Assembly: GCF_000002075.1 (NCBI RefSeq)
Contig: NW_004798181.1
Span: 7,063 to 71,062, forward strand
Direction of reading: 5' to 3'
DNA length: 64,000 bases
Origin: Aplysia californica
Taxonomy: Eukaryota
A program made the translations under genes and the position numbers. How positions within the stretch are numbered: the first letter of the stretch is position 1; every line of letters starts with the position of its first letter. The notes beneath the pieces are model-generated. The model saw only the letters and a list, made by a program, of their open reading frames with translations, searched no databases and had not been told where the DNA came from. Below, one piece after another: positions 15,662 to 63,943 of this stretch.

Positions 15662-16068
15662 GTTGTTGTTGATTTCAAATCCATTTAGATGCGAGCATTT
15701 CGCTCTTGGCAGCTCAATGCCTCCCTCAAGTAACGACATGTCCTTGTCATCTGGTCAATGCCAGAGTAGAGCAGGCTATGTAAGTCTGTAGGTGTGTGTA
15801 GGAGCCTGCGTTGAAGAACTGCCAGGTTTGGGCAGTGAAGGAGAAGATGTTCAACGGTCTCCTCGTGGTAGTTACAGTGTCTGCAATGGGGTTCCCACAT
15901 GGGGTTAATTCTGTTTATGTGCTTGTTGGTGTGTAAGTGACCTGTGCGGGCTCTAAAGATCAATGTCTGATCGGCTCTACATAAAAGATTCAAAGGGTCT
16001 TTGGGGTTGGGTTTGTCCATGTACCTGAAAAGAGATCATCCTGTTTCTGCGTTGGCCAATCTGTTTAT
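15662..16068 (-). mobile_element. 5'-truncated LINE (I/Ingi/Nimb group) 3' end, in an intron of gene D
   Basis: IFRARTGH...CRHC...ETVEHLLLHC is the C-terminal CCHC motif. (CAA)n tail; TSD atcg(c/t)attttcat. Confidence 0.8.
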
Positions 16069-28192: not shown

Positions 28193-30117
28193 TCACAATT
28201 GTAAGGTTTTTCTAGTGTGTATTATTTTTTCATGGATCAGTAGATTAAGCTTCTGAGTAAACTCAGCTCCACAGATTTCACACTTGTAAGGCTTTTCTCT
28301 TGTGTGTGTTCTCATATGTGCTGTCAAGCGACTGCTCTTAGGAAACTTCACACCACAAACTTCACACTTGTACGGGTAAGGCTTTCCTCCTGCGTGTGTT
28401 CTCATATGCACCGTCAAGCGGTCGCCCTGAGCAAACCTAACACCACAAACTTCACAACCGTAAGGCTTTTCTTGGCTATGTGTTCTTTCATAATGAGTCT
28501 TCAAACCGTATCTCGATGTAAACCATTTACCACAAACTTCACATTTGAACGATTTTTCTCCAGTGTGCGTTTTTTTATGTCTCTTTAAATAGCTTTTTAG
28601 TGCGAACTGTTTGCCACAAACTTCGCAGCCGTAAGGCTTTTCTCCTGAGTGCGTTTTCTCGTGGGCGTGTAGATTGGCTGTGTTTATGAACCTAAGTCCG
28701 CAGACTTTACATTTGTAAGGCTTTTCTCCTGTGTGTGTTCTAGTATGCACAATCAAATATTGCCTTAAAGTGAACCCAATGCCACAAACTTCACACTTGT
28801 ACGGTTTTTCTCCGCTGTGTCTCTTTCTATGACTCTTTAAGCCAGAGGCTCTTGCAAACCGTCTATCGCAATCTTCACACTTGTAAGGTTTTTCTCCAGA
28901 GTGTAGTTTTCTGTGACTCTTTAGAGAGCCACTCTTGGCAAATTTAGCACCACAAACATCGCATCCGTAAGGCTTTTCTCCTGTGTGTGTTCTTTTATGA
29001 ATCTTTAGATCACTACACTGTGCAAACACAGCATCACAAACTTCACACTTATAAGGTTTTTGTCCAGTGTGAGTCGTGCCATGAATCCTTAAATCTTGTT
29101 TCCGTGCAAACCGTTTATCACATACTTCACATTTGTAAGGTTTCTCTCCCGAGTGAATTATTTCATGACTCTTCAAACCGCCCGGCTCTGCAAACTGTCT
29201 ACCACAGACTTTGCACTGGAAAGGCTTTTCGCCCGTGTGTTTTCTTTTGTGGCTCTGTAGTTTTATCTCATTTTTTAAGCCAACGCCACATATTTCACAG
29301 TGGTAAAGCTTTTCTTTCATAGCATGTGTTCTTTTGTGACTCTTCAGATGAATGCTCTCGGCAAACTTTTCACAGCAAACTTCACACTTGTAAGGGTTTT
29401 CTTCTAGATGAATCCGCTTGTGTCTGTTAAGGCTTCGAGCATGTATATACCCTGCACCACAAACATCACATTTGTAAGGCTTTTCTTTTTCTCCAGCACT
29501 TATTCTTTTGCCAGTCGCAGACTTGGGTCCATCAGGGACAGCGTTGCTATCTTGTCCAGGAGGAGTCTCTCTGTGCAGTTGTTGAGGTAATGCACCACCA
29601 GAAGACTGGGTACAATTAGTGGATGGAACAAGAGATTGTGAACAAGAAGTCGAAGAAAAGCCCAAGTCGGAAATGTCACTTGTGGACTGCCGAACAATAT
29701 CTGGGCTGTAGTCACATGATGGCTCGTTCAACTTTACCGTAGTGCGTTCTTTTAGCGGTTTTTCTTCAGATGCCTGCGTGAAAATATGACATACGTGCTC
29801 CGTTCCCGAAGTGGTATTCGCCATAACCATCGTTATTTCGGAAGCGTAACCTTTCTGCTTCTGGCCATCATTTACTGCACTTTTGCTGCACATGTCCTTA
29901 TCATACTCTCTGCTGAGATATAGATCAAAGACTTTCTTCTCCGGATTATGGATAGAAGATGTGGTTTCTTCCGAGGCACGGTCATCTTTTCTTTGATCAC
30001 CTATTTGACTTGTGTCAACAACATCGCAACTAGGACCGACTCCGTGTCTCTCCAAGAGGTATTGCTGTGTTGCTGGGTGTGTGGAGGTAGCCAGACTGTG
30101 GTCGTAAGGAACGCCAC
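28193..30117 (-). CDS. ZF gene A, finger-array exon: Ser/Thr-rich spacer + 15 tandem C2H2 fingers (spliced product ~972 aa)
   Basis: Acceptor ttttgtctttttccag|GT. 15 CxxC..HxxxH units with TGEKPY-type linkers. Phase 1 joins the exon at 35527..34534. Confidence 0.92.
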
Positions 30118-30753: not shown

Positions 30754-31513
30754 CAGCCAAAATTGTCCAAGTCCAAGACAGCCACCCATTGTCGAGGAGA
30801 AAAAGCTGGACGACTTGGACAGTGCATTACAATTTTTTTTTAACACAACGGGGAATGGGAAGTGGTCGTTTGTACAGGTGATTGTCTTATACAGGTGGTC
30901 GTTTGTACAGGTGATTGTCTTATACAGGTGGTCGTTTGTACAGGTGATTGTCTTGGACATGTGGTCGTTTGAAAAGGTGATTGTTTTGGACAGGTGGTCA
31001 TTTGTAAAGGTGATTGTTTTGGACAGGTGGTTGTTTGTAAAAGTGATTGTCTTGGACAGGTGGTCGTTTGTAAAGATGATTGTTTTGGACAGGTGGTCGT
31101 TTGTAAAGATGATTGTTTTGGACAGGTGGTCGTTTGTACAGATGATCGTCTTATACAGGTGGTCATTTGTACAGGTGATTGTTTTGGACAGGTGGTCGTT
31201 TGTACAGATGATCGTCTTACATAGGTGGTCGTTTGTACAGGTGATTGTCTTATACAGGTGGTCATTTGTACAGGTGATTGTCTTGGACAGGTGGTCGTTT
31301 GTACAGGTGATTGTCTTATACAGGCGATCGTTTGTACAGGTGATTGTCTTATACAGGTGGTCGTTTGTACAGGTGATTGTCTTGGACAGGTGGTCGTTTG
31401 TAAAGATGATTGTCTTATACAGGTGGTCGTTTGTAAAGACGATTGTCTTGGACAGGTGGTCGTTTGTAAAGGTGGTTGTCTTGGACAGGTGGCCATTAGA
31501 GTAGGTGTGACTG
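30754..31513. repeat. 33-bp minisatellite (~19 units, 30860-31492) inside a Tc1/pogo-type MITE, in the gene A intron
   Basis: Unit aggtggtcgtttgtacaggtgattgtcttatac is two 16/17-bp CAGGTG subunits. Ends TA-CAGCCAAA..TCCAAGACAGCCACC and GGACAGGTGGCC..AGGTGTGACTG form degenerate inverted termini. Confidence 0.8.
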
Positions 31514-34533: not shown

Positions 34534-35527
34534 CTTGATCTGAGCCGGCCAAGACAGCATAACCAGAATTTGCGACATTGTTTTCCAAAAGAGCTGAGTC
34601 AGCAGAAAAAGATAAAGTTGAACCGTCACCAGTTACAACATCAGCATGATCAGTGCCTGCGTGCGAACTCTGTCCTGCACACAAACTCGTCACATCAGCG
34701 ATTTGCTGTTGTATTTCTTCGGCCTCATTATAACAATCCAACATTGATCCACACTCCTCTTCCAGCACTTCCTGCTTCACATTGACATTATTCTCTATTT
34801 CCTGTTTCATTTCCAGACGGTGATTAGGGAAAAGTCCAAGCTGTGGTTCATCTTTCAAAACACAAGTACATTTCACACACGTTACTTTAGTCTCTATGTT
34901 TTCTTCTCCCTGCTTCACATTAAGTCTATCATCATCTAGATCTAGTTCAGTCTTCACTTCTGGACAATGATTAGGGAAAAGTCCAAGCTGTGGTTCCTCT
35001 TTCAAAAAACAAGTCGGTCTACATTTCTGACACTCTTCAGTCTTTGTGTTTTCTTCTTCAGGAAATGAAAACAAGGGCTCGTCTCTATCAATCTCAATGT
35101 CAATACATTCGTTTTCGACAGGCTGGCAGACATCAGTTACATCGCATGGTAGGTCTGCTTCAACATCTTGCTTTATTTCTCCTTTGAAACTTTCACTTTC
35201 AATAGCTGCAGGTTTTTCCTCTTCAAGTTCAAGCATGGAGCTAGAACCAAACTCTTCTTTTACCACAGACTCCCCACTCCTGATGTCAGGTTTTACAGGA
35301 TCTCTATCAGTACTATCACTATCACTGCTACAACAAGACCTAGGAGAACCACAGGGTTCAGTTTTCACAACAGGAAAAACATCAGGCTTTACGTCTTCAC
35401 CATTATCAGTGGGTGTACAGACATTAAGTTGACAACACGATTCTTTTTCCATAGCACTGTCATCATTAAAATCTTGTCCTGAGGAAAACATTGTATTCTC
35501 CTTCCTCTTTTTATCCACATTCAACAT
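34534..35527 (-). CDS. ZF gene A, acidic N-terminal exon (MLNVDKKRK...SDQ)
   Basis: ATG 35527 aligns with the paralogue B start (MLNMNRKKK). Donor GATCAAG|gtaaaa is identical in all three paralogues. Confidence 0.88.
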
Positions 35528-42389: not shown

Positions 42390-43209
42390 ATGTTGAATAT
42401 GAACAGAAAAAAGAAGGCAGAGACAATGTTTTCCTTGGGACATATTAATGACGGAAGTCTGATGGAAAAAGAACAATCATGTTGTGAACCTTTCTGTGCA
42501 CCAGTTATAGATGAAGACATAAAGCCTGATGTTTCTCCAGTTGTAAAACGTGAACCTGGGCTTGGTTCTTCTACATCTAGGCCAAGGTTTCATTGTACTT
42601 GTAGAAGAAATGGGACCGAAAGTGATGTAAAAGTTGACATTGGAAGCGTTGAGACCGTCGTAAAAGAAGAGTTTGGTTCTTACTCTGTGCCCAATCTTGA
42701 AGAAGAAAACGCTTCTTCTGGTGATAGCGGAAGTTTTGATGGAAAAATAAAGCATAATTTTGAAGGACCATGCAATGCTACTGATGAGGTCAGACAGACT
42801 GTTGAAAACAAATGTATTGACATCAAAATTAAAGACGAGCCTTTGTTTTTGTTTCCTGAAGAAGACATAACACCAAAAATTAAAATGAGTCCGAAAAGTG
42901 CTGATGTTGTGGAAGACGAACTCCAGTTTCCTGATCATAGTCTGGAATTAAAATTAGAAATACAGAATTATTATGTGAAGCAGGAAGTGTTGGAACAGGA
43001 GTGTGTATCCACGTTGGATCGTTCCAGTGAGGCTGGAGGAATACAACTGAAAATCTGTGATGTGAAGAGTTTGTGTGCGGAGCCGAGTTCAAACCCAGAC
43101 ACTGATGCTGTTGTGTCCACGGTCAGCGGCTCTACTTCTGATGATCCAGCTCTTTTGAAAATGAAATACGGCATCGCAAGCTCTGCTCAATGGGGCATTG
43201 AGGATCAAG
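42390..43209 (+). CDS. ZF gene B, acidic N-terminal exon
   Basis: ATG start; clear homology to the A and C exons; donor GATCAAG|gtaaaa, phase 1. Confidence 0.88.
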
Positions 43210-44696: not shown

Positions 44697-45865
44697 GTGG
44701 GATTCCTGACAAGCAGGCAACCTCCACACACCCAGCAACACAGCCATACCTTATGGGGGAGGATACTTTTGGGACAGGTCAAATGATTGATCAAATAGAA
44801 ATTGACTGTGTCTTGGAAGAAACCACATCTTCTTTTATCCATGACCCAGACAAGAAAGTCTTTGATCCCCACATCAGCAGAGAGTATGATAAGGAAATGT
44901 GCAGCAAAAATGTAGTGAATGATAGTTGTCGGCAGAAGCAGACAGGTTACACTTCTGAAGTAACGACGACAATGGCAAATACCAATACTATGGACGTTTG
45001 TTGCGCTCACTCTTCTAGTGTTACAGCACCTCAGCTGCACACAGAGACCCACACTGGCCAAGACAGCGCCACTCCACCTGTTGGACTTGAGTTTGTGACT
45101 GGTAGAAGAACTAGAGCTGGAGAAAAACCTTACAAATACAAATGTGAGGTTTGTGGTTCAGAGTTTTCACAGAAAGTCCAGTTGAAGGTTCACAAAAGAA
45201 CACATACTGGAGAAAAGCCTTACAATTGTGAAGTTTGTGGTGCAACGTTTTCACGGATTGGCCACTTACAGATTCACAAAAGAAGACATACTGGAGAAAA
45301 GCCTTACAAGTGTGAAGTTTGTGGTTTACAGTTTGCACAGAGTGTCCAGTTGAAGATTCACAAAAGAACACACACTGGAGAAAAGCCTTACAAGTGTGAA
45401 GTTTGTGGTTCAAGCTTTTCACGGAATGACCACTTAAAGGTTCACAAAAGAAGACATACTGGAGAAAAGCCTTACAATTGTGACGTTTGTGGTTTAAGGT
45501 TTGCACAGCGTGGCAGCTTAAGGATTCACAAAAGAACACACACAGGAGAAAAGCCTTACAATTGTGACGTTTGTGGTTTAAGGTTTGGGAATAGCAGCGC
45601 CCTGAACCGACACAAAAGAACACACACTGGAGAAAAACCTTACAAATGTGAAGTTTGTGGTTCATCGTTTGGGGATAGTTGCATCCTGAAACAACACAAA
45701 AAAATACACACAGGAGAAAAGCCCTACAAGTGTGAAGTTTGCGATAAGCGGTTTACTCAGCGTGGCAATTTAAAAATTCATGAAAGAACACATACAGGAA
45801 ACAAGTGGGAAATCTGTGGAATTGTGTTCGTGCCGATGAGTAATCAAGAGAACCATAACACATAG
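44697..45865 (+). CDS. ZF gene B, finger-array exon: spacer + 8 intact C2H2 fingers (spliced product ~662 aa)
   Basis: Acceptor tttttttgcag|GT, in frame with ORF 44753..45865; HTGEKPY linkers. Confidence 0.9.
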
Positions 45866-51242: not shown

Positions 51243-51493
51243 ATGAGACTACCAGATGCAGATGCCGTGGACCAAGCTCTTCTGATGTGGTTTAAGGAAG
51301 CAAGGAGGAAATTGGTGCCAAAACCCCTGTTCGTGGGTAGGCTACTTGTGGCAAGGGAAACTACCCATGAATAAGTACAGCTGGATTAGTCCACAAATGC
51401 TTACTTTCCTTTGCATTTCTGATTTAACAGGGATCGGATATAACAGGACATTTTCTCTACTCCCACCATCCCTGTCATATCAGGTTTCCACTG
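51243..51493 (+). mobile_element. Right end of a second Tigger-like element, nested at a TA within the 49712-51556 MITE
   Basis: MRLPDADAVDQALLMWFKEAR. Right TIR cctgtcatatcaggtttccactg-TA, after which the host MITE resumes (tctcatctcgttgaatccgag, cf. 37707). Confidence 0.8.
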
Positions 51494-55980: not shown

Positions 55981-56523
55981 TTCTTCATTCTTCGTTAAAT
56001 TAGCCTAGGTTCTAGCCTTATCTTCAATCTTGAATCTTCATCACTTATCATACCATTGCCAGAGATGGCCATTCGCCAGAGCCGACAAAAGCCGTTCCTC
56101 CTGCAATTTTGACTTTGAAGTTGCTTTTTAACATCAACATAGATCTAGTTTATTTTTTTTAGCTCCTGATCAATTGCGGGTAAATTTTTACTTTCAGTCC
56201 CGCACACAGTTGTACTGCTTCTTCGTCGGGGGTCAAATTCTTTAGCCTATGTTGTGATCTTCAGGACTTCAGGCCTAATAGAAGTCAAGTTAGATTTTAG
56301 TGCACTCTGGTACTGGTAGATCTAGTAGTAGATCTAGATCTAGATCTAGATATCTAGAATCTAGATCTCTATAACTCGGAGGACAGAACCAAGACCAAGT
56401 TTGGAACAAATTTTTTAGTCTCTTCTTTTATTATTAGGCCTATCATAGAGGCTATGTTGAAACAGAAAGAAGAGGGAACAGACATGATTGTTTTCCTCGG
56501 GACGTATTAACCACGACAGTCTT

Positions 56524-57265
56524 ATGATGGAAAAAGAACTGTCATGTTGTGAACTTTTCTGTGTACCGGATATAGATAAAGACATAAAGCCTGATGTTTC
56601 TCTGGTTGTAAAAAGTCTTAAAAGTGAACCTGGGCTCGGTTCATCTACATCTAGGTCTCTTTGTAGCAGTGATAGGACTGATAGAGATGTAAAACCTGAC
56701 ATTGAGAATGTGAAGACTGTGGTAAACGAAGAGTGTGGTTCTAATTCTGTGCTTGATCTGGGAGAGGAAAAACCAGCTGCTGTTGTTGATAGTAGAAGTT
56801 TTGATGGAAAAGTAATGCATAATTTTGAAGTACCAAGCAATGCAACTGATGATGTCCGACAGACTGTTGAAAACAAATGTATTGACATTGAAATTAAAAA
56901 TGAGCCTTTGCTTTTGTTTCCCGAAGAAGACATAAAAACTAAAATGAGTCCGAAAAGTGCTGATGATGTAGATCTAGAAGACGAACCGCAGTTTCCTGAT
57001 CATAGTCTGGAATTGAAATCAGAAATAGAGAATTATTATGTGAAGCAGGAAGTGTTGGAACAGGAGTGTGGATCAATGTTGGATCGTTCCAGTGAGGCTG
57101 GGGGAATACAACTGCAAATCTGTGATGTGAGGAGTTTGTGTGTGGAGCAGAGTTCAAACCCAGACACTGATGCTGTTGTGTCCACGGTCAGCGGCTCTAC
57201 TTCTGATGATCCAGCTCTTTTGAAGACCGGCATCGCAAATGCTCAATGGGGCATTGAGGATCAAG
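56524..57265 (+). CDS. ZF gene C, acidic N-terminal exon (ancestral ATG at 56454 now out of frame; first in-frame ATG 56524)
   Basis: Highly similar to the B exon; donor GATCAAG|gtaaaa, phase 1. Confidence 0.75.
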
Positions 57266-57998: not shown

Positions 57999-59269
57999 GT
58001 GGGATTCCTGACAAGCGCGCACCCTCCACACACCCAGCGACACAGCCATACCTTATGGGGAAGGATACTTTTGGGACAGGTCAAATGATGATTGATCAAA
58101 TAGAAGTTGACTGTGTCTTGGAAGAAACTACATCTTTTATCCATGACCCAGACAAGAAAGTCTTTCATCCCCACATTAGCAGAGAGTATGATAAGGACAT
58201 ATCATGCAGCAAAAGTGCAGTAAATGGTAGTTGTGGCCTGAAGCAGAGAGGTTGCACTTCTGAAATAACGACGACAGTGGCAAATAATACCAATGTTATG
58301 GACCTTTCTTGCGCTCCTTCTTCTAGTGTTACAGCTCCTCAGCTGCCCACAGAGACCCATACTGGACTAGACAGCGCCACTCCACCTGTTGGACTCAAGT
58401 TTATGACTTTTAGAAGAACTAGAGCTGGAGAAAAACCGTACAAATGTGAAGTTTATGTTTTACGGTTTGGAAATAGAGGCCAGCTAAATTCTCACAAGAG
58501 AACACACACAGGAGAAAAGCCTTACAAATGTGAAGTTTGTGCTGCAGCATTTGCAAGAAGTTCCGGCCTGAAACAACACAAAAGAAGACATACTGGAGAA
58601 AAGCCTTACAAGTGTGAAGTTTGTGATTTACAATTTGCACAGTGTGGCAGCTTAAAGATTCACAAAAGAACACACACAGGAGAAAAGCCTTACAAGTGTG
58701 AAGTTTGTGATTTACAATTTGCACAGTGTGGCAGCTTAAAGAGCCACAAAAGAACACACACAGGAGAAAAGCCTTACAAGTGTGAAGTTTGTGGTTTAAG
58801 GTTTGGGAATGGTAGCGCCCTGAACCGACACAAAAAAACGCACACTGGAGAAAAACCTTACATGTGCGACGTTTGTGCTGCAGCATTTGCAAGTAGTTCC
58901 GGCCTGAAACAACACAAAAGAAGACATACTGGAGAAAAGCCTTACATATGTGAAGTTTGTGGTTTAGGGTTTGCATGTAGTAGCGGCCTATGGAATCACC
59001 AAAAAGTACACACCGGAGAAAAGCCTCACAAATGTGAAGTTTGTGGTTCAGGGTTTGCCTTTCGTAATGACCTGAAACGACACCAAAGAAAACACACTGG
59101 AGAAAAACCTTACAAGTGTGAAGTTTGTGGTTTGTTATATGCCGACAGGAAAGGGCTAAAGATTCACAAAAGAACACATTCAGGAGAAAAGCCCTACAAA
59201 TGTAAAGTTTGCGATAAAGGGTTTGCACACAATAAGACTTTAAAACATCATGAAAAAACACACACATGA
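57999..59269 (+). CDS. ZF gene C, finger-array exon: spacer + 1 broken (CEVY) and 9 intact C2H2 fingers (spliced product ~670 aa)
   Basis: Acceptor tctttttttcag|GT; ORF 57983..59269; ends at a TGA inside a linker. Confidence 0.85.
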
Positions 59270-60950
59270 AACACGCATTATAAGTGTGATGAAGTCTGTG
59301 GAAGTGTGTTCGTGCAGATAAGTAATCTAGAGGACCATAAAAGAACACACATAGTAAGGACAGGAGAAAACCCGTACAAGTGTGAAATCTGTGGAATTGT
59401 GTTCTTGCATGTGAGTAGTGTAAAAATTCACCCAAAAATGCACACTGGAGAGAAGCCTTACAGATGTGAAGTTTGTGGTGCAGGCTTTGTGAACAGTGTT
59501 CAGCTAAAGACTCACCGAGGAATACACGCTGGAGTGAAGCCCTGCAAGTGTGACGTTTGCGGTGCAGGATTTGCAAATGGTGACGACCTGAAGCAACACA
59601 AAAGTAGACACGATGGAGAAAAATGTTACAAGTGTGAAATCTGTGAAACTTCGTTCTCGCGGAAGAGCAATCTGCAGATTCACAGAAGAATACACACTAG
59701 AGAAAAGCCTAATAAGTGTGACGACTGTGACGTAAGGTTTGCAATATGTTAACACCCTGAAGCTACACAAAAGAACGCTCACAGGAGAAAAGCCTTACAA
59801 GTGTGAAATGTGTGGAATTATGTTCTCTCACTTGGATACTCTGAAGTCTCACCAAAGAACACACACAGGAAAAAAGCCTTACAAGTGTGAAATCTATGGA
59901 CTTGGGTTCTCACAAACGGCTAGTCTAAAGGCTCACCAAAGAATACACTCTGGAGAAAAGCCTTACAACAACAAGTGTGAAGTTTGTGGTGCAGGGTTTG
60001 CAAACAGTAGTCAGCTAAAGATTCACAGAAGAACGCACATACGGGGAAAAAACATAATAAAAGTGAAGTTTGTGGTGCCTGTGTATGTAATAAAAACACA
60101 AAGCGACACAAAAGAAGACAGTAAGGTGGAGAACGGTTCATCTGAGATGTCTGCGGTGTAAGTGTGTGCAGTCAGTGGCAGCCTGTTTGAACATCGACAA
60201 TTGTATGCAAGAGAAAATCTCTGTCTATTTTCTAGGCAAGATCTTAGAAAGTGGCAGAAGATTACATATGGCGTAAAGTTAGTAAGAAAAAGTTTTACGC
60301 ATATGTGAAGCGTGCTGACAAAATGAGTTACTTCTCGGATTCAGGCCTTCAGGAAATAGATACATCACACTTATAGGTGAAGTTTTTACAATTTATAAGT
60401 ATGAAATAAAAGGTATGTTATACTTAAAGAATATGGCATCAATAGAAAATCTACAAATTTGACCCCAGTGTCAATTTCTGGCCAATATCTCCATTTGTGG
60501 ACTGCGAGAAGTAACTCATTTTGTCAGCACGCCTCACATATGAAGTTTGTGGTAGGCTACAAGGTTCATAGAGGACAACATGACAAATGATATTATTATT
60601 ATTATTACTATCATTTTTATTATAATTATTATTTTTAGTGTGAAATTCAAGATCGCAAATAGAAAGTCGCAGAAGATCACATGTTTAGTAAGAAAAACCT
60701 TTACGCGTGTGAAGTTTGTGGAGCAAGGTTCGTAGAGGACAATATTATATCGTATATATCTATATCTATATTATAATTATAATTTTTGTTTTTAGTATGA
60801 GATTCAAGATCGTTAGAAAAAGGCATTACTATTATTATTGTAAGAAAAACCTTTACGTATGTTGAATCGTGAAGTTTGCAGTGCAAGGTTCGCAAAGGAC
60901 AGCAGCCTTCAGAGTCTCAAAAGAGCAAGCGACTGGAGAAAAACCTAAGA
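59270..60950 (+). pseudogene. About 9 partly intact fingers plus further relics beyond the gene C stop
   Basis: ORF 59306..59752 is in frame with the CDS. A frameshift near 59745 leads into 59739..60161. Increasingly decayed tgtgaagtttgtgg units continue to ~60950. Confidence 0.85.
60305..60537 (-). mobile_element. Sola1-like MITE copy 3, inserted into a relic finger
   Basis: TSD atat; reverse orientation relative to the 9868 copy. Confidence 0.8.
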
Positions 60951-62874: not shown

Positions 62875-63943
62875 GGGTAGGTGGACACATGCCCTTATTA
62901 GTTGGTTTTTGTGGTTATTTATGTTCTGTTCTAGTTTTCATTTCATTCTGTTCTGAAATCTTTATTTTTCACGTTTTTACACTCTGTGTGGCTACAATTA
63001 ATGATCTTCTGGATGCTTGTAACAGAACACAAAAAATTCTGGTGCTTTAGATTAAGTTACCTCTATCAACATATTTCTAATCTATATTTGTCGTCATAGA
63101 GAGTTGAAAGTTTGAAAATGATTGGCTACTTTTATGGCAACTTTTGGACAATATAATGGAAACAAACACAGATGCTAGCCCTGTAAAGTGCGGTAGCCAA
63201 GCATTCACACACATTTCAAGGATGTGAAAAACGATTCTCCTGTGCCATTTCCTCCTTTTTTTTGGTTGTTCCTCAAGTTCCTGTAGAAGTAAGGAATGCT
63301 ACATGTCACACTTGTCAACCCCATCATGTAGTTGGCATTGGTTGCTCAGAAGTAGTTGGCATTGGTTGCTCAGAAGTAGTTGGCGTTGGTTGCTCAGAAG
63401 TAGTTGGCGTTGGTTGCTCAGAGGCAGTTGGCGTTGGTTGCTCACTCAGAGGCAGTTGGCGGTGGTTGCTCACTCAGAGGCAGTTGGCGGTGGTTGCTCA
63501 CTCAGAGGCAGTTGGCGTTGGTTGCTCACTCAGAGGCAGTTGGCGTTGGTTGCTCAGAAGTAGTTGGCGTTGGTTGCTCAGAAGTAGTTGGCGTTGGTTG
63601 CTCAGAGGCAGTTGGCGTTGGTTGCTCAGAAGTAGTTGGCGTTGGTTGCTCAGAAGTAGTTGGCGTTGGTATCTCAGAAGTAGTTGGCGTTGGTATCTCA
63701 GAGGCAGTTGGCGTTGGTATCTCAGAAGTAGTTGGCGTTGGTTGCTCAGAAGTAGTTGGCATTGCTTCCTGTGGGTTGGGCCTGTCGTCAGTAACCATTG
63801 CAGGCATGAAATCTGCATCAGTGAACCGTGAGGGTTCGTTAAGTGGCCAGACTCCAGTCACCCTGAAACGTGACTGAATGTTCTGTGGTGATGCAGCCTG
63901 AATCCATGCCCTACCAATCAGTGGCGCCATGTCGTAAATTGTG
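62875..63943 (-). mobile_element. Decayed pogo/Fot1-like DDE transposase C-terminal part, containing a 24-bp tandem repeat (63328-63765)
   Basis: IYDMAPLIGRAWIQAASPQNIQSRFRVTGVWPLN...FTDADFMPAMVTD matches the A...NI.SGF..TGIWP.N...F.D.DF.P..VTD motif. It is followed by (TTSEQPTP)n. The left boundary is approximate. Confidence 0.7.

Follow-up and report, generated by a model that had tools for sequence, protein, structure and literature searches.

A conserved peptide resembling the ATF7IP-interacting motif in the N-terminal exon of a lineage-restricted Aplysia zinc-finger family

MBD1 contacts MCAF1/ATF7IP in two parts, through its repression domain and through SUMO. A short peptide that binds ATF7IP at its fibronectin type III (FNIII) domain, the ATF7IP FNIII-interacting motif (FAM), has been defined in MBD1, ZMYM2, MGA, ZMYM4 and ZFP518A by Tsusaka 2020 (PMC7706265), where KIAA1551 is listed as an ATF7IP interactor. 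According to the same source, ATF7IP binding is lost upon mutation to R of I576/L579 in MBD1, of V187/L190 in ZMYM2 and of V217/L220 in ZMYM2, so that in the mutated pairs the critical L is preceded, at a distance of three positions, by a likewise critical hydrophobic residue. The FAM of mouse MGA reads IVNVTSLAA, and its conversion into RVNRTSRAA or deletion of the motif abolished ATF7IP binding, SETDB1 recruitment and trimethylation of histone H3 at lysine 9 (H3K9me3) at a TetO array (PMC12303078). In the literature searched on ATF7IP/Windei, FNIII and the motif, no description of a FAM was found outside mammals, and thus none in invertebrates or in zinc-finger expansions. How lineage-specific zinc-finger expansions outside tetrapods are linked to the heterochromatin machinery is an open question, and for FiNZ, the expansion in cyprinid fish, the recruitment of heterochromatin factors is stated as unknown (PMC10547256). 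Here, we analyzed a 64,000-nucleotide stretch of the sea hare Aplysia californica (GCF_000002075.1, contig NW_004798181.1, positions 7,063 to 71,062 of the forward strand; hereafter designated the window), in which open reading frame (ORF) analysis revealed three paralogous two-exon C2H2 zinc-finger genes (A, B and C), each with a FAM-like peptide in its first coding exon.

Translation of the window yielded the peptides in which the original prediction had seen a possible ATF7IP-binding motif, namely, LKICDVKSLC in gene B (43047-43076, plus strand), LQICDVRSLC in gene C (57112-57141, plus strand) and QQIADVTSLC in gene A (34679-34708), and I-x-D-V-x-S-L-C is indeed common to all of them. The gene A peptide is encoded on the minus strand, the plus-strand translation of the same positions being unrelated. 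In all three genes, the motif is located close to where the first coding exon ends. For comparison, FAM was defined here by the residue numbers from PMC7706265 together with the MGA sequence from PMC12303078, a consensus that the published logo (Fig. 3g) may refine or weaken. With the last L taken as position 0, the hydrophobic residue at -3 and the L itself correspond, by those residue numbers, to the critical pair of MBD1 and of FAM1 and FAM2 of ZMYM2. Genes A, B and C share I, V, S and L with the MGA FAM, and the consensus of the family described below, ISNVRSL, is identical to IVNVTSL of MGA at five of seven positions (I, N, V, S and L), including all three residues mutated in MGA. The literature on which the original prediction drew is real: PMC7706265 names MBD1, ZMYM2, MGA and ZFP518A as carriers of the motif and includes KIAA1551 among the interactors. 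At the sequence level, the match to the validated FAM of MGA is closer than that prediction had recognized.

The three genes belong to a larger family. Searching the 927-Mb assembly (4332 contigs, with the window on contig C911) gave 37 matches with the first exon of gene B and 44 with that of a diverged paralogue (L015), spread over at least 15 contigs with the biggest cluster on C282; after removal of duplicates, there are at least 34 distinct copies of the exon bearing the conserved block around the motif. The distant matches to gene B cover query residues 206-254 alone, that is, the stretch around the motif. Moreover, the N-terminal region and the fingers lie in a single open frame in L004, L009, L050, L051, L054, L055 and L047, which shows that both exon types belong to one protein. 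Five of nine family proteins looked up had names ('zinc finger protein 714', '436-like', '91', '37' and '708'). Twelve paralogues, gene B not among them, were used to build a profile of the block, which was run against 1.84 billion representative proteins and returned 14 hits at E up to 0.001, of which 13 are family members or fragments, indicating a narrow distribution; apart from Aplysia itself, just a few relatives yielded family members. The remaining hit (P0014), a 1196-residue repeat protein matched over profile positions 29-69 only, was taken as spurious. Just outside the window, a fourth close paralogue (L002, G000:C911:75405-76217) is 73% identical to the first exon of gene B and reads LQICDVRSLC.

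Conservation at each position was counted over 33 distinct paralogues, leaving out one copy (L020/L051), which has a one-codon deletion. I occupies position -6 in 30 of the 33 and V position -3 in 29, S is found at -1 in 29 (with G in 4) and L at 0 in 31, and position -4 is N in 20 and D in 8. The full I..[IV].SL motif is present in 25 paralogues and the minimal [IV]-x-S-L core in 26, so that the family-wide conservation that the original prediction had proposed to check is borne out. In the largest subfamily (14 close copies), it is mostly the x positions that vary (Q/K, S/T, N/D and R/K), and the motif is retained across subfamilies that are otherwise 37-41% identical in the exon. The motif also persists across organisms in two diverged homologues: P0013, whose best genome matches are only 44-58% identical, still reads LQIQISNVRSL, and P0007, with a best genome match of 55% identity and diverged flanks, still reads LQLQISDVRSL. 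The ratio of nonsynonymous to synonymous substitution rates (dN/dS), estimated by a pooled Nei-Gojobori calculation on all pairs of 13 representatives, was lowest within the exon in the seven motif codons (0.37, with a dS of 0.62), followed by a 25-codon block (0.57, dS 0.44) and the rest of the exon (0.70, dS 0.86), values for which the pairs are non-independent and in which both rates are raised by the poor alignment of the remainder. In 5000 composition-preserving shuffles per exon of 12 representative exons, I..[IV].SL arose in 0.3-1.8% and the stricter I.[DNE][IV].SL in 0.1-0.4%; the latter occurs five times in the six-frame translation of the window (127,996 residues), and three of the five are those of genes A, B and C. 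In a subfamily with long open frames (L054, L055, L053 and L014/L050, on contigs C417 and C22), the motif has become ISTVRGL or ISTERGL, that is, S was changed to G with or without a change of V to E.

The original prediction had also turned on whether the lineage possesses ATF7IP, and the Aplysia genome does encode an FNIII domain of the ATF7IP type. PF16794 (fn3_4) matched two adjacent minus-strand exons on contig C271 with 37.6 and 66.3 bits (cut-off 27.1), a stop codon directly after them gives the domain a C-terminal position, and long acidic and S/P-rich exons lie upstream. One upstream exon (L063:2334-3161, minus strand, C271) contains the hydrophobic-acidic sequence LIDLTDEDES, which we take to resemble the SUMO-interacting motif of human ATF7IP, located presumably shortly before its FNIII domain. 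Genome searches for the SETDB1-binding domain (PF16788) and for Tudor_4 of SETDB1 gave no matches, but the controls of these searches gave none either. SETDB1 itself is annotated in Aplysia and was measured by quantitative PCR in neurons (PMC11488329). A sequence search of PDB with the second FNIII exon (exon b) returned titin and generic fn3 entries only, with no solved ATF7IP FNIII domain or complex among them, and a search with the S/P-rich ATF7IP exon gave no match. The Aplysia MGA locus was located with PF16059 on contig C831, where the segment after the bHLH exon (L067:8507-8947, plus strand) reads VVNLVSP; this nearest look-alike is similar to the MGA FAM in position and, in part, in sequence, with P in the place of the critical L.

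The exon that carries the motif matched no Pfam family in gene A, B or C, and the KRAB domain (PF01352) in particular had no match in these first exons; a genome-wide KRAB search was likewise empty, but its own controls gave no matches either. AlphaFold2 run on a 12-sequence alignment of the block returned a predicted local distance difference test score (pLDDT) of 55.5 and a predicted template modelling score (pTM) of 0.15, a confidence so low that a folded domain was rejected for the block, and the motif is predicted to lie in a disordered, accessible segment. For the block region of P0001, ESM Atlas gave no lead to a fold or family (best feature score 0.86, template modelling score at most 0.26). 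Of the corepressor motifs HP1 (PxVxL), CtBP (PxDLS) and Groucho (eh1), none fits the conserved residues by eye. The exon is rich in psi-K-x-[ED] sites of the SUMO consensus (7 in gene B vs 1.05 expected and 12 in gene A vs 1.28 expected), and for 8 of 12 representatives the count was matched in 0 of 2000 shuffles. The family-wide best-conserved spot of the exon is one such site, VKQE, in which V27 and E30 are invariant and K28 is kept in at least 90% of the aligned sequences. The enrichment in consensus sites suggests that the first exons may be SUMOylated.

A mechanism can be proposed on this basis, in which DNA binding would fall to the fingers and the peptide Q-x-Q-I-[SC]-[ND]-V-[RK]-S-L, as a short linear motif of FAM type, would bind the FNIII domain at the C-terminus of the ATF7IP orthologue of Aplysia. 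Docking of ATF7IP would then bring SETDB1 and lead to H3K9me3, without KRAB or TRIM28, and the psi-K-x-E sites of the same exon may provide a second contact, via SUMO, to SUMO-interacting motifs of ATF7IP or SETDB1. The ATF7IP-type interpretation of the original prediction thus stands in part: family-wide conservation, the presence of a partner FNIII domain in the lineage and the match to the MGA FAM support it, and ATF7IP binding, SETDB1 recruitment and silencing are all three steps that we infer from sequence. We tentatively assign the motif as the centre of a docking peptide that is conserved within a disordered N-terminal effector exon. Its function as an ATF7IP-docking, FAM-type peptide that opens a KRAB-independent route to SETDB1 is plausible, if far from assured. 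The wider proposition, that a mollusc-specific zinc-finger expansion may have evolved its own KRAB-independent link to SETDB1, with a FAM-type peptide acting on ATF7IP's FNIII domain and helped by an array of SUMO acceptors, is possible and rather doubtful.

Several observations weigh against ATF7IP docking, and most of them fit an explanation in which the ~30-residue block docks another partner, such as a mollusc corepressor, a SUMO E3 or a SUMO-pathway protein, the FAM likeness being coincidental and silencing proceeding via the SUMO-consensus array or by another route. Conservation is roughly uniform over the block (consensus DHxSQAGGLQLQISNVRSLCMEQSSNPDTD, with the motif central) instead of being limited to the FAM residues; it extends to DHxSQAGG upstream and CMEQSSNPDTD downstream, with Q-9 in 31 of 33 paralogues, S-15, Q+4 and S+5 in 30 each and C+1 in 28. 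When 13 representatives clustered at under 65% identity were ranked (L057, with an N run, was left out), the motif window (0.603) came only 9th of 266 seven-column windows, the top being ENFVKQE (0.716), which is the SUMO-consensus site; the strong psi-K-x-[ED] enrichment points in the same direction. The minimal [IV].SL arises in 10-26% of shuffles, and the stricter pattern was defined post hoc, with the match already known. Eight of the 33 copies are without the full motif, reading SSNVRSL (L030, a copy with in-frame stops), ISNVRSV, ISTVRGL (twice), ISTERGL (twice), TSNLRSL and VSNSNSS, and open-frame copies are among them, namely ISTERGL (L054 and L055) and VSNSNSS (L061 = P0002). Finally, [ILV]..[IV].SL is absent from the plus-strand ORFs of at least 60 residues in the part of the Aplysia MGA locus that was covered, 23 kb including a 2195-base N run. 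Docking of a partner other than ATF7IP is a serious but uncertain alternative, against which stand the agreement with the MGA FAM at five of seven positions and at all three residues shown to matter, the rarity of the strict pattern in shuffles, and P0007, in which the flanks have changed and LQLQISDVRSL is intact.

Two further explanations dispense with docking of this kind. The low-confidence helix that AlphaFold2 places over the motif (residues 70-84 of the block) also counts against a FAM-type peptide, and it would suit L-x-I-xx-V-xx-L as an amphipathic helix (or strand) for self-association or as a nuclear export signal; its spacing presumably fits the reverse-class CRM1 export-signal pattern. 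We consider this very improbable, because spacing patterns of that kind are highly degenerate, no explanation is offered for the conserved polar residues (Q, S, N/D, R and S) and the model is of low confidence (pLDDT 55). Alternatively, the motif might have no function of its own, being kept by the youth of the paralogues and gene conversion or by a DNA- or RNA-level constraint close to the exon end. Codon usage in the block is near uniform, as exemplified by TTG for L at position 0 in 31 of 31 copies, and dS in the block is roughly half of its value in the remaining exon (0.44 vs 0.86), which weighs against selection on the docking peptide alone in that shared ancestry or gene conversion contributes to its conservation. 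Nevertheless, dN/dS is lowest in the motif, whose dS nears the exon background, and the motif is retained both in homologues whose identity to anything in the Aplysia genome is only 44-58% and across subfamilies with otherwise strongly diverged exons, making an idle motif unlikely. Docking of ATF7IP through a FAM-type peptide is the explanation that we favour.

The organization of the three genes is given in Table 1. Each of the three first exons ends at a GT donor (caag/gtaaaa in gene B) in phase 1, and the finger exons are preceded by pyrimidine-rich cag acceptors. The second exon of gene B matched zf-C2H2 and zf-H2C2_2 in Pfam (8 stretches, E = 6e-74), and its fingers form a C2H2 array with TGEKP linkers, as is characteristic of tandem C2H2 zinc-finger transcription factors. 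The exons were searched separately and the gene models consulted for the junctions only, so splicing rests on the models and on the splice-site sequence: P0008 (gene A) has the junction ...SDQG/GVPYDH and P0004 the junction ...EDQG/GIPDK at gene B, in both cases the splice junction read from the sequence. The public model P0004 fuses genes B and C into one 1343-residue protein. In gene C (56360-56520), the ATG matching the gene B start is out of frame and in-frame stops lie ahead of the open frame; the lack of a clean start reflects a frameshifted 5' end, an assembly error or the use of an internal Met.

Table 1. Exons and sequence elements of the three zinc-finger genes, in window coordinates
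Feature	Position	Strand	Remark
Gene A zinc-finger exon	28193..30117	-	ORF
Gene A first coding exon	34534..35527	-	ORF
Gene A FAM-like core IADVTSL	34682..34702	-	translation
Gene B first coding exon	42390..43209	+	ORF; acidic, many SUMO-consensus sites
Gene B VKQE SUMO-consensus site	42975..42986	+	family-wide best-conserved spot of exon
Gene B conserved ~30-residue block DRSSEAGGIQLKICDVKSLCAEPSSNPDTD	43017..43106	+	second conservation peak of exon
Gene B FAM-like core ICDVKSL	43053..43073	+	I -6, V -3, S -1, L 0
Gene B zinc-finger exon	44697..45865	+	8 C2H2 fingers, preceded by cag acceptor
Gene C first coding exon	about 56488..57265	+	ORF; start uncertain
Gene C FAM-like core ICDVRSL	57118..57138	+	translation
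Gene C zinc-finger exon	57999..59269	+	ORF

Directly 3' of the gene C finger exon, more zinc-finger open frames in shifted frames are found (59306-60161), which may continue the gene after a frameshift or stem from a decayed neighbour. A 33-bp tandem repeat (30862-31492, 19 copies, 89% matches) with several frames open lies in the gene A intron, and a 24-bp tandem repeat (63328-63764, 17.5 copies, 93% matches) is open on both strands. By eye, we take an ORF at 15685-16020 (minus strand) to be a remnant resembling the C-terminal part of a non-long-terminal-repeat (non-LTR) retrotransposon protein, and a fragment at 51243-51374 (plus strand), next to an N run, is presumably a pogo/Tigger-like helix-turn-helix remnant. 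The Tigger-like peptide of the latter was seen again near the ATF7IP locus (L031).

The proposal names one particular partner and an interface of seven residues, for which three point mutations have already been validated in mammals, so that the question of how such an expansion is connected to heterochromatin becomes directly testable by pull-down or tethering. If it is true, the FNIII-FAM interaction would extend from mammals to lophotrochozoans, the Aplysia family would be analogous to KRAB-TRIM28 by convergence and would provide the first FAM beyond the vertebrates, and the FNIII-FAM interface would be ancient and repeatedly co-opted by fast-evolving DNA-binding families.

Compared with the mammalian FAM carriers, the Aplysia family has the same kind of short peptide, in which position -3 is hydrophobic, -1 is S and 0 is L, and shares I at -6 and N at -4 with MGA; in both cases the motif resides in a DNA- or chromatin-binding repressor (a putative one in Aplysia), for which in Aplysia an FNIII partner is encoded in the same genome. 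It differs in that the putative docking motif occurs in a mollusc, where it belongs to a multi-copy, lineage-restricted family of tandem zinc-finger genes, and forms part of a longer conserved block, about 30 residues in length. MBD1 and its partner MCAF1/ATF7IP offer the parallel of a FAM-like motif and SUMO acceptor sites in a single repressor, whereas in Aplysia SUMOylation is suggested by consensus-site enrichment only. The tetrapod KRAB zinc-finger/TRIM28/SETDB1 system is similar in its clustered, fast-duplicating tandem C2H2 genes, in the splicing of a small N-terminal effector exon to a single large finger exon, and in the proposed end point of SETDB1 and H3K9me3; in contrast, the Aplysia first exons are without KRAB, and the proposed adaptor would be ATF7IP, engaged via a linear motif, instead of TRIM28, engaged via a folded domain. 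Finally, FiNZ of cyprinid fish (PMC10547256) is likewise a lineage-specific zinc-finger expansion with a short, acidic and conserved N-terminal sequence, but it is unrelated in sequence and lineage, and for the Aplysia family a specific candidate partner can be proposed.
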